A DNA stretch of 64,000 nucleotides from Selaginella moellendorffii (lineage: Eukaryota > Plantae > Lycopodiophyta), in contig NW_003314350.1 in the NCBI RefSeq assembly GCF_000143415.4, positions 248,001 to 312,000 of the forward strand. The letters run 5' to 3'. The notes under the pieces are model-generated. The model had not been told where the DNA came from and did not search any database. It was given only the letters and a program-made list of their open reading frames with translations. Position numbers and translations under genes: made by a program. Below are positions 48,994-52,323 of this stretch, in pieces. How positions within the stretch are numbered: position 1 is the stretch's first letter; the number at the start of each line of letters is the position of its first letter.

Positions 48994-50007
48994 ATGGCCA
49001 GTTCCAAAGCGCTCGTTCTCTCCTGGTTCGTTGTCTCTGTTCCACTGCTCGTGATCTTCCTGCTGTTCCCTCACACCGCCACCATCTTGTGCCCATCGAT
49101 CTCCTTCTCTCCGCAGCAGCAGCAAGCTCTCGAATCTCGCGAAGAGGACGCTGTGGGTGTGAGTCGCGAGGATTTGACATGGGTTTCGTCGCAGATGGCA
49201 AATGCCCAGCTCGGGGATCCTCCAAAGTCGGCCGAGGACTGGATCCAGATGCGCAAAGGGATAAATCCCCGGACGAGAGAGGAGCAACTCTATGATCTTC
49301 GCCGGTAAGGTCGAGTGATCTCTATAGCAAGCTTGAGTTGCGAGCTGGCGTTTCCTTCCTACAGGTACCACGGGATATCTCATTACGAAGAAAGCGAAGA
49401 GAAAAACCACACGAGATTACCTTGTCCGAGCGAGCTTCTCGTCGAGCAGCACCACAGCAACTATGGCGAGCCTTGGGCTGGAGGTCGAGACGTCTTTGAG
49501 TTCATCGCAAAGGCCTCGGCTCTCAAGAGACACCACCGGGTGTTGGAAGTTGGCTGTGGAACTCTGCGCGTTGGCCTCCATTTCATCAGATTTCTCGCGG
49601 CCGGGAACTACCACTGCATCGAAAAGGATCCGCTCTCGCTCATGGCTGCGTTTTCTTACGAGTTGCCATCGCAGGGACTGCTTCACAAGAGACCCGTCAT
49701 CGTTCGCAGCGATAATCTGGAATTCGAGCTGTTAGGAGACAATGAATACGATGTAGTCTATGCAAGCGCAGCGTTTCTTCACATGCCTGATAAACTCGTC
49801 TGGACTGGTCTCGAGAAGCTCGTGCCGAGGATCAAGCCGGGTGGAAGAGTTTTCGTGTCTCACAACATTAAGTTTTGCAGCAGGCTCGGAGGAGACGAGT
49901 GTAACAAAAAGCTGCGAGAGCTGAAGCTGGAGTACGTTGGCAAGCAGACACACGATAGTCTCTTGTTCAATCACTATGAGATCTGGCACCAGTTCGTCAA
50001 GGTGTGA
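48994..50007 (+). CDS. Membrane-anchored SAM-dependent methyltransferase, 2 exons
   Basis: Intron 49305-49364 joins DLRR|YHG in frame; VLEVGCGTLRVG SAM motif I; HHSNYGEPWAGGRD; N-terminal TM segment. Confidence 0.88.
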
Positions 50008-50008
50008 T

Positions 50009-51211
50009 TCATTTTTTGTCTGTACCCTGTATTTAAACCATGGATGAGTAAACTGTCGTTAATTTTTCGTGAGGTTTCTACCTGGTTATTGTCCTCTAGC
50101 TTGAGAGCACTGAGAAAAAAACCTGTGAGATATGGAGGCTGCAACAAAAAACACAAAAATAATTCTTTGTGGCGTTGAAATACTTATTTACCTCTGGGAA
50201 GCCAACTCTAAAATGGTAGACGAGCTCGTTTTTGCCTTGCCTTAAAGCTCCACCCTGCTTTCTCATACACGCTTCGCACTGCGGGTAGAACCGTTGCAAC
50301 TCGAGCTTATGGACCATGTTGAATACATGCTTGGCAAGTGAAAAGTTGAATTTTTTCAGTATTCTCAGTTTCTCGGCGACCTTGTTCTTCATTACGACGT
50401 TGGGTGGCATATGATCTGCTATGCTAAGAAAATAATTCACGAGTGAATGTCAGCTCCAGGGAAATTGAGAGTACCTGGTCCCTTTGTAGCTTCCACAGTG
50501 ATGACAACCATACTTGCTAAACAAGTCTCTTACGAGCTGTGCTTCTACATCGCCTGCGTACCTTGATCCTCTAGCTGACCAAAGAATAATCAGCACGAGA
50601 GGGACAGAGAGAAAAAATCAAAGGAGGCAAACTGACCAGGCACTGAGTATCGTGAGAGTGCTCCAGGATGACTTAAGCTACTTGGCATCACATTCCTGTA
50701 GTGCCCGCCAAGTATCTGTATGAACAGTAGGCTACATTGTCTAGTCTATGAAAATTTCCAAGCAAACCTTAAACAAAACCATGCCCACTGCCGCATGAAG
50801 AACTAGATCGCCAACACTCGGCATTTTCCTCTTCCGGCTCTTGCCATTGCCCTCTTCTACAATAGATTCCAGCGCAAACGCTACCTGCGTTGCAATGAGA
50901 GCTCTAAGAATCAAAGAAATCTATGACTGAAATTGATTAACGAGAACCTGAGCTGCGAGAACCGAGGCCGATGCCACCGCCACGCCTCCCAGCAGCGATC
51001 CGGCAACAGGGGTAGCGCAAGAAACCCGGAATGCCTTCCCTGCACACTAGAAATCCGCAAGAAATCCCCGATAAATTTCCCGATTCACAGCTCGCAGCAG
51101 CGATCGCACCTGCCATGCTAGCAATGCCGCATTGAATCCCGCGGCAGCGCCGGCGCAAGGAATCGCCACCCCGAGAAGGCGCTCTACCGGTGGGAGGAGC
51201 CCTAGAATCAT
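50009..51211 (-). CDS. Uncharacterised membrane protein with a C-terminal zinc-binding HNH-like nuclease domain (~270 aa, 7-8 exons)
   Basis: Phase-consistent GT-AG exons 51211-51110, 51046-50948, 50884-50768, 50715-50637, 50574-50475, 50423-50192 and 50138-onward. Motifs GCHHCG, IADHMPP and QRFYPQCEACMRKQG. The 3' end is either 50009 (extra intron) or 49974. Confidence 0.8.
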
Positions 51212-51237
51212 CAAACCCGGAAAGAATCTTTCTATTG

Positions 51238-52323
51238 CTATAAAAGAATCTTGGCAAGGACAAGGAGGACAAGCAAATGCCAACAAGAAAACGTGGCCTT
51301 CCACGAGCTCGAACTCTGGACGTTTGAGTCCGTACCGGCGGTCGAGCCCGGCACGAAGTTTGGATTGGCTCCGTACAGCGCCTGTGCGCCGTCGATATCG
51401 TCCTGTCCAAACGCTGTCTTGATCTGCCGAGGAGCGATGCTGGGAAACATGATCGCCGCGGAATCGCCCGAGTGGCCCAGCCCGATCAGGTGTCCAATCT
51501 CGTGGGTCACCACGGATTCCAGATCGATCGCGGCCAGCGACGTCGCGGATCGAACATTGACGCTCCAGGACTCGGAGGAGTCGAGGTGGAATCGCCCATC
51601 CTCGGGCGCGAATGCGTGAGCTAGAACGCCCATTTGCCCATCGAATGGATGCCGGTCGCCGTGATCGAAGCCCGCGAAGGCGATGACGATGTCCGCGGAG
51701 GAGATCGACGAGGTCTCTGTGAATGTGAGAGGGACGATGTTCGCCCAGCGCTGGAATCCCCTGCTAAAGGCCGTCCGGAGAGAAGTGAGGGGGATTCCAG
51801 AGGCCAGCGACGTCGTGGATTGATCGAATGCGTATGTGAGCGATCGCTTGGAGACCCATCTGGGCGTTCCTGGGAAGAAGGAGTAGTGCTTGACGAAATG
51901 GGAAGTGCCGGGATGGGTGAGATTCTGGAGCATTTGCGAGACGCCGCTGGGATCCACGTCGATTCCACCGCATCTGGGCGTGACGAGCTGGGCGATTGTG
52001 GCGGAATCGAGGTTCCCGGTGACCGGGAGGCGGAAATTCTGCTGGTAGAGCCTCACGGCGGCCTCTAGCGCGTCATCGAAGGAGAGATCGGCAGTGAGAG
52101 TGGAGTTGCCGAGGTAGCCGAAATCCACGAAGTAAGATTTGAGCTTCTGGATCGCGGGCTTGGAATCGCCCTTGTGTGCGTCGACGAGCGAGAGGAGATC
52201 CGCCCACGCCCCGGCAAGATTGCTGGTGGGCAGATCGGCTAGAATAGCGGTGTCGAGCCCCGAGGAGAAGCCCACGATGATTGCGAAGTGGAAGAATGCG
52301 AGGAAAAACAGTCGATTTGCCAT
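51238..52323 (-). CDS. Matrix metalloproteinase (matrixin, M10A), probably GPI/membrane anchored
   Basis: Signal peptide, PRCG cysteine switch, HEIGHLIGLGH zinc motif, AIMFP Met-turn and hydrophobic C-terminus; intronless. Confidence 0.95.
   Translation of the reverse strand: MANRLFFLAFFHFAIIVGFSSGLDTAILADLPTSNLAGAWADLLSLVDAHKGDSKPAIQKLKSYFVDFGYLGNSTLTADLSFDDALEAAVRLYQQNFRLPVTGNLDSATIAQLVTPRCGGIDVDPSGVSQMLQNLTHPGTSHFVKHYSFFPGTPRWVSKRSLTYAFDQSTTSLASGIPLTSLRTAFSRGFQRWANIVPLTFTETSSISSADIVIAFAGFDHGDRHPFDGQMGVLAHAFAPEDGRFHLDSSESWSVNVRSATSLAAIDLESVVTHEIGHLIGLGHSGDSAAIMFPSIAPRQIKTAFGQDDIDGAQALYGANPNFVPGSTAGTDSNVQSSSSWKATFSCWHLLVLLVLAKILL

Follow-up and report, generated by a model that had tools for sequence, protein, structure and literature searches.

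A gene on the minus strand occupies positions 50009-51211 of the window, the whole 64,000-nt stretch of Selaginella moellendorffii DNA that was analysed. There is no long ORF on this strand; three-frame translation revealed coding blocks split by short GT-AG introns. The resulting splice model begins with an ATG at 51211, ends with a TGA stop (50011-50009) and comprises eight exons and seven introns (Table 1), giving a phase-consistent coding sequence of 804 nt, or 267 codons plus the stop. The introns are 51-63 nt each and mostly AT-richer than the exons. An acceptor for exon 3 at 50904 was rejected because it breaks the frame, whereas 50885/50884 keeps the frame and was confirmed by the database protein described below. 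The original prediction had placed here a hidden spliced gene encoding a membrane anchor and an HNH nuclease domain of the polymorphic-toxin type. Its coordinates and the peptide strings that it quoted were exact, all of them being present on the minus strand, and the phase consistency of its exons was confirmed, but their number is eight rather than seven. A matrixin ORF on the same strand has its stop 26 nt upstream of the ATG, and a class-I methyltransferase ORF runs convergently on the plus strand and ends one base from the stop codon. Because the matrixin, HNH and methyltransferase genes are so tightly packed (49315-52323), their transcripts and UTRs must overlap.

Table 1. Exons of the gene at 50009-51211, with the parts of the protein that they encode, and the two flanking ORFs.
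Feature	Coordinates	Strand	Content
Matrixin ORF	52323-51238	-	Peptidase_M10 and PG_binding_1
Exon 1	51110-51211	-	Residues 1-34 (residues 1-34 of XP_024518152.1); most of hairpin helix 1, Ala/Gly-rich; AlphaFold2 helix 9-39
Exon 2	50948-51046	-	Residues 35-67; end of helix 1, loop FRVSCATPV (51031-51005), start of helix 2
Exon 3	50768-50884	-	Residues 68-106; end of helix 2, variable basic linker, helix 3 (50815-50768); AlphaFold2 helices 49-79 and 91-107
Exon 4	50637-50715	-	Residues 107-132 and first base of codon 133; pre-core LGG..RN.MPS...PGA...SVP
Exon 5	50475-50574	-	Residues 133-166; ARG..YA, helix, first zinc knuckle GCHHCG (50509-50492)
Exon 6	50192-50423	-	Residues 166-243; beta1 with putative catalytic DH in DHMPPN (50416-50399), insert (50395-50300)
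Exon 6, further parts		-	beta2 and helix QRFYPQCEACMRKQ with second CxxC and invariant Q222 (50296-50255); H236 (50215-50213)
Exon 7	50082-50138	-	Residues 244-262; conserved C-terminal helix PPYLTGFFLSALK, absent from bacterial versions
Exon 8	50009-50026	-	GTDKK and TGA stop (50011-50009)
Class-I methyltransferase ORF	49315-50007	+	Convergent

A phmmer search with exon 6 alone as query, against 1.84 billion representative sequences, retrieved a 267-aa protein, XP_024518152.1, with 100% identity over residues 167-243. This is the RefSeq entry 'uncharacterized protein LOC112341759' of Selaginella moellendorffii. All eight exon translations were found in it at the expected offsets and both split codons agree, an exon-by-exon agreement that far exceeds chance. 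We conclude that the locus is LOC112341759, a real gene that is annotated by RefSeq and has no functional name. It is hidden, as had been claimed, in the sense that no single ORF shows it, but it was already annotated by NCBI. No second copy was found within the 64,000-nt window. Elsewhere in the S. moellendorffii genome lie a second copy, LOC112349592, whose protein is 99.6% identical to that of LOC112341759, and a paralogue, LOC9652271, which is 37% identical. Isoform X2 of LOC112349592 is the same through exon 6 (residue 243), continues for seven different residues and then ends; it would be without the conserved C-terminal helix.

A search with XP_024518152.1, followed by one with a 44-sequence profile, yielded ~90 relatives. 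All are labelled 'hypothetical', none has a Pfam domain, and they belong to bryophytes (Sphagnum, Marchantia with MPTK1_1g08910, Calypogeia), a lycophyte (Diphasiastrum), ferns (Ceratopteris, Adiantum), green algae (Closterium, Coccomyxa, Chlorella, Chloropicon, Ostreococcus, Cymbomonas, Enallax, Flechtneria) and a stramenopile (Mallomonas). Seed plants were absent from the ~90 relatives retrieved in this non-exhaustive search. Identity is ~35-48% from algae to lycophytes, and the family is low-copy and slowly evolving. In alignment >90 homologues are collinear across the exon junctions, and the C-termini of homologues, like the GTDKK of exon 8, are short polar tails that contain basic residues.

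The conserved residues cluster in a pattern that the original prediction had read as the treble-clef HNH signature, CxxC...DH..P...CxxC. In the 44-sequence eukaryotic alignment S118, G124, G155, C156, H157, C159, G160, Q209, Q214, C215, C218 and Q222 were invariant, and the near-invariant residues included D169, H170, P172, N174, R210, Y212, P213 and H236. The cysteine pairs C156/C159 and C215/C218, the D169-H170 pair and Q222 were invariant or near-invariant in each of three sets (44 eukaryotic, 32 bacterial and 63 mixed sequences). The helix residue right after the second CxxC is Met or Ser in the family, and it is likewise non-His in the bacterial toxins. The predicted metal site is atypical, with Met or Ser rather than the usual His or Asn ligand directly after the second CxxC. 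The invariant Gln (Q222) lies four residues, or one helical turn, beyond the second CxxC, and Glu65 of T4 EndoVII occupies the same +4 position.

The domain is not recognized by existing models. The Pfam HNH families (PF01844, HNH_5 PF14279 and others) did not reach their thresholds with any exon or with any of 10 full-length eukaryotic members, and HNH_5 was touched by only two of the 32 bacterial domains (E 0.0036). A per-exon Pfam scan, a PDB sequence search and a word search limited to lengths of 63-200 aa all came back blank for the gene; Pfam, NCBIfam and PDB sequence searches gave nothing significant for the domain, which no Pfam or NCBIfam model covers.

The fold was modelled with AlphaFold2, using the core of a Xanthomonas Rhs tip with the 63-sequence mixed alignment. 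The bacterial core was predicted at pLDDT 94.2 as a helix (28-41), a CxxC knuckle, a strand (59-63) ending in DH, a second strand (76-80) and a helix (82-94) opening with CxxC. When this model was compared by VIA-align with 48,161 chains, 58 chains had a Z of 2 or more, and the first 14 matches were all HNH nucleases or HNH-containing chains (Z 4.5-3.1); HNH nucleases made up nearly all of the matches from Z 4.5 down to 3.0. The best was the GVE2 HNH protein (5h0o; Z 4.5, 68 residues aligned, rmsd 3.1), followed by Cap5 (4.4), the ZRANB3 HNH domain (4.3), T4 EndoVII (4.1), McrA (4.0) and Gme HNH (4.0), and after those by the HNH domains of IscB and Cas9. In a profile search of the PDB, the CxxC, DH and CxxC motifs fell in register with those of 4h9d (E 0.45). 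The Z values are low in absolute terms (<=4.5), as would be expected for a motif of ~70 residues, and we call the fold HNH because the matches are consistent and the motifs agree with them. Thus the invariant residues, the confident core model and its top 14 matches support the treble-clef HNH reading. VIA-align with the core and the PDB profile point to HNH; Foldseek, which had been suggested, found no match for either the whole model or the core model.

The whole plant protein was modelled at pLDDT 87.5 and pTM 0.84. Helices 9-39, 49-79 and 91-107 precede the core, a C-terminal helix spans residues 244-254, and the insert (173-203) forms two helices at lower confidence. A VIA search with the whole model was swamped by helical hairpins.

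The resemblance to the C-terminal domains of bacterial Rhs toxins, which the original prediction had proposed, was followed into bacterial genomes. A scan for the pattern QR[FL]YPQCxxC identified 70 bacterial loci, in Acidobacteriota, Actinomycetota, Pseudomonadota, Cyanobacteria, Bacillota and other phyla. Many of the matches are the C-terminal ~110 residues of ORFs that measure from 1,200 to >1800 aa, and these carriers bear RHS_repeat, Rhs core, TEN_YD-shell or PT-HINT; others lie in short stand-alone cassettes. When the eukaryotic alignment was compared with the bacterial one, hhalign gave a probability of 99.7% (E 1.6e-26) over plant residues ~121-230, a stretch that covers PG.A..SIPARG, GCH.CG, DH.PP and QR.YPQC..C...Q. 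Detectable homology with the toxins starts in exon 4, the hhalign alignments beginning at residues ~98-121. Among 55 ORFs directly downstream of the toxin genes, 18 belong to one BLAST cluster. Its six members that were scanned with Pfam are Imm21, five at E 1e-29 to 1e-43 and one (L002) at 29.9 bits, just below the cut-off of 30.7. The other downstream ORFs include two Imm33-like proteins, one DUF7003 protein and 27 members of one unnamed family of ~121 aa.

RHS or PT-HINT carriers with immunity genes downstream are the anatomy of a polymorphic toxin-immunity system, and the proposed resemblance to Rhs tips is therefore correct: the domain stands at the extreme C-terminus of RHS-repeat or PT-HINT proteins, is followed by immunity genes and aligns to the plant family with near-maximal hhalign probability. 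Both the Rhs-tip and the algal homologues that had been expected were found, the former by the pattern scan and the latter by the phmmer and profile searches. No match was obtained in phage genomes by tblastn with the bacterial core; 11 IMG/VR contigs carry the domain.

Several features of the bacterial loci were recorded in passing. The ~121-aa family (27 of 55 downstream ORFs; L012:5282-5644 and 26 other loci, alignment A4) is a candidate undescribed immunity protein of this toxin clade; it had no match in Pfam (20 members scanned), in NCBIfam (two members) or in the PDB (profile). At L010:5391-5936 a DUF7003 protein is encoded directly 3' of a stand-alone Bacillus HNH toxin cassette, and this position points to an immunity function for DUF7003. 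A conserved N-terminal region is common to toxins that are 260-400 aa long and has a consensus like ELDPNWRPTPS...EG.I...A.EA..R..EL; these toxins occur at L012, L019-L022, L025, L029, L032, L033, L040 and other loci, in Xanthobacteraceae and relatives. This region had no Pfam or NCBIfam match in the one member scanned (L012); it may serve in non-Rhs delivery, as a trafficking or adaptor domain that is not yet described.

These properties correspond to a clade that has been described computationally. The NGO1392-like HNH domain, or Tox-SuFu-Nuc, has the signature CxxC, DH, CXXC, Q and is borne by RHS and HINT carriers (Zhang et al. 2012, PMC3482391, Table 2); its immunity partners are Imm-SuFu, Imm13, Imm21, Imm33 and Imm38, and its distribution includes viridiplantae and stramenopiles (PMC3482391). 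For Imm21 the sole toxin partner listed is the NGO1392-like HNH domain (PMC3482391, Table 3). The occurrence of the nuclease in plants was noted in 2011 by Zhang, Iyer & Aravind (PMC3113570). The agreement extends to signature, carriers, immunity partners and phyletic pattern, and residues ~121-230 can be assigned to the NGO1392-like HNH clade, the comparison with the clade being made through its published description. The plant protein shares the CxxC, DH, CxxC and Q of the signature, whereas the carriers and immunity genes belong to the bacterial relatives only. The domain clade and its transfer to plants (2011-2012) and the RefSeq annotation were thus known already, and the finding is not new in kind; what is newly described here is an uncharacterised Selaginella member of a computationally known clade. 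The original prediction had suggested that the protein may be an uncharacterised nuclease, and had named membership of an already characterised family as an objection. The clade was indeed described by computation (PMC3113570, PMC3482391), but we found no functional study of the family or the gene in the literature searched, so that the claim holds as to experiment.

A tree was built from 31 eukaryotic and 66 bacterial domains (107 columns, quick search); one branch parted the two groups, with an SH-aLRT of 95.5. The eukaryotic family forms one group against the bacterial sequences. An old domestication had been read from the many introns, and the spread over green algae, bryophytes, lycophytes, ferns and a stramenopile, together with the single branch between eukaryotes and bacteria, agrees with it.

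Two known groups of HNH domains were compared with the family. The classical zinc HNH/EndoVII domains (T4 endonuclease VII 1e7d, EcoKMcrA 6ghc, Gme HNH 4h9d, phage GVE2 HNH 5h0o and CBASS Cap5 7rwk) have the knuckle-beta-beta-alpha topology in common with it, with CxxC before beta1, DH closing beta1 and CxxC opening the helix. Unlike these, the plant family falls below the Pfam HNH thresholds and has as its helix ligand a Gln at +4, not a His or Asn at +1. GH-E (PF14410) is likewise a small toxin HNH domain, with cysteines in some members, and gave the nearest look-alikes in an ESM Atlas search with exon 6, its sole link to the family being this feature score of 0.83. It was rejected: there was no Pfam match, and the motif here reads DH instead of GH, with Gln in place of Glu. 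The NGO1392-like assignment supersedes this lead.

The plant protein differs from the bacterial toxins in both what it lacks and what it adds. It lacks trafficking and repeat domains, and no immunity gene adjoins it, neither neighbour at the locus resembling one. Motif spelling differs slightly, with GCHHCG and DHMPP in the plant protein and GCHTCG and DHQPP in bacteria. The core of the eukaryotic proteins is preceded by an Ala/Gly-rich helical hairpin and then by a third helix, and its beta-hairpin is enlarged by 25-45 aa, an insert located between DHMPPN and QRFYPQC in the plant protein; H236, which is near-invariant, and a C-terminal helix are further additions. Conservation of the hairpin loop, (F)RVSCATPV, matches that of the catalytic core (majority-residue fraction 0.76 versus 0.77), and S43 and G54 of the hairpin are near-invariant. 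A loop this conserved would be more than a plain membrane anchor needs.

The membrane anchor of the original prediction is plausible. An Ala/Gly-rich hairpin is present, but its hydrophobicity is only borderline (KD19 1.5-1.9): the KD19 maxima of the Selaginella helices are 1.67 and 1.89, and those of the Ostreococcus, Coccomyxa, Cymbomonas and Mallomonas members are below 1.5. For residues 8-83 the structure search returned transmembrane hairpins, but at Z 5-6 such matches do not rise above the noise for helices. Membrane tethering is plausible at this borderline hydrophobicity; given the high pTM, the modelled N-terminal helices may instead pack on the nuclease domain and not span a membrane. 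Tethering to an organelle, which had also been proposed, is unsupported. The eukaryotic alignment contains no conserved N-terminal targeting sequence, its N-terminal extensions are variable and the Selaginella protein begins directly at helix 1. Nor did the plant protein contain a signal peptide or secretion domain.

Two bacterial sources of the N-terminal module were considered and rejected. In some Rhs tips the stretch from the Rhs cleavage motif to the core contains Ala/Gly-rich helices, as if the module had come with the toxin. However, an HMM of residues 1-112 found no match in the 70 bacterial loci, hhalign to the Rhs tips with such helices begins only at residues 98-121, and a hydrophobic segment upstream of the core was present in only five of 60 toxins; the likeness is compositional only. 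Because of these three results we regard the hairpin as added in eukaryotes, any parallel in bacteria being compositional at most. A fused immunity protein was rejected as well, since hhalign against the immunity-like family of 121 aa gave a probability of 0.1%. An ESM Atlas search with residues 1-112 gave no usable match.

The absence of the usual His or Asn ligand after the second CxxC, and the eukaryotic insert in the beta-hairpin, could be taken to mean that the protein has lost catalysis and serves as a zinc-finger scaffold for binding nucleic acid or protein, a change that the GHH domain of Teneurin has undergone. We regard this as highly improbable, since D169, H170 and Q222 show exactly the conservation seen in the bacterial toxins, which are necessarily active, and the Met/Ser position is non-His in those toxins too. 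The plant protein is most likely an active nuclease, predicted to be sequence-nonspecific, because it shares its catalytic residues with toxins that must be active. By analogy with the HNH/EndoVII fold, the four cysteines would hold a structural zinc and His170, at the end of beta1, would act as general base; Asp169 and Gln222, possibly with Asn174 or His236, would position a divalent metal for phosphodiester cleavage.

Our overall reading is that the gene encodes an NGO1392-like, toxin-derived nuclease, most likely active, that is controlled by its hydrophobic module, and we think this probably correct. As the nuclease has no immunity protein, the module would control it, either as a membrane tether or by keeping it latent, and release might occur only in regulated destruction of nucleic acid, for example in cell death, defence or organelle DNA turnover.

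A DNA-repair role was suggested for the eukaryotic members by those who described the clade, from their conservation and low divergence (PMC3113570, PMC3482391). On this account the protein would be a housekeeping repair or recombination nuclease of the nucleus or an organelle, with the helices part of a soluble fold. The conserved catalytic residues, the single compact unit predicted by the model and the weak hydrophobicity of the helices in several members are all consistent with it. Yet a core enzyme would not be expected to be absent from all seed plants among the matches, and the protein has neither a recognizable DNA-binding or repair-partner domain nor a conserved targeting sequence, while the structure matches of the hairpin are to transmembrane hairpins. 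We therefore hold a repair role to be quite unlikely.

Since the domain stems from a killing domain, keeps its catalytic residues and has no immunity gene beside it, the protein could alternatively serve as a weapon or suicide effector, directed at viruses or microbes or employed in programmed cell death, with the hairpin inserting in a membrane on activation. Metazoa offer a precedent: DFF40/CAD (HNH-CIDE), the apoptotic nuclease, is thought to be derived from a bacterial polymorphic-toxin HNH domain and to be restrained by regulation and not by secretion (PMC3417536), as the plant protein would be. DFF40/CAD differs in that it belongs to another HNH clade (DHxxE) and another lineage and has a partner, ICAD, whereas a cell-death role of the plant protein is only conjectured. 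The hairpin also had a weak compositional match to the hairpins of MakA/Nhe-type alpha-pore-forming toxins (E ~0.1), but this match is not significant and the region is of low complexity. Furthermore, low copy number and slow evolution from algae to lycophytes are unlike arms-race genes, and a signal peptide or secretion domain is missing. A weapon or suicide effector is, in our judgement, unlikely.

The family is a clear example of a bacterial killing domain that photosynthetic eukaryotes have preserved, together with its catalytic residues, over hundreds of millions of years and in the absence of its immunity partner. It raises the questions of how a cell survives such a nuclease and what the equally conserved hairpin does. 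The apparent absence from seed plants suggests that the process was lost or replaced there. A more specific proposal, to which we give very little credence, is that in algae and non-seed plants the protein is the executioner nuclease of regulated DNA destruction, kept latent by the hairpin and released on organelle or nuclear DNA, for instance when zygotes eliminate the chloroplast DNA of one parent, or during programmed cell death. If true, it would be a green-lineage counterpart of DFF40/CAD whose recruitment from a bacterial toxin was a separate event and which seed plants have lost. The single or low-copy orthologues in tractable species, Marchantia and green algae among them, make the role directly testable.

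Apart from the gene, positions 1-30000 of the window contain a unit of ~8.25 kb repeated in tandem ~3.7 times at 95-100% identity. The array has an internal repeat spaced ~4.16 kb, and its GC content swings from 0.35 to 0.51 and back with the same periodicity. The array may consist of LTR-type elements that share terminal repeats.
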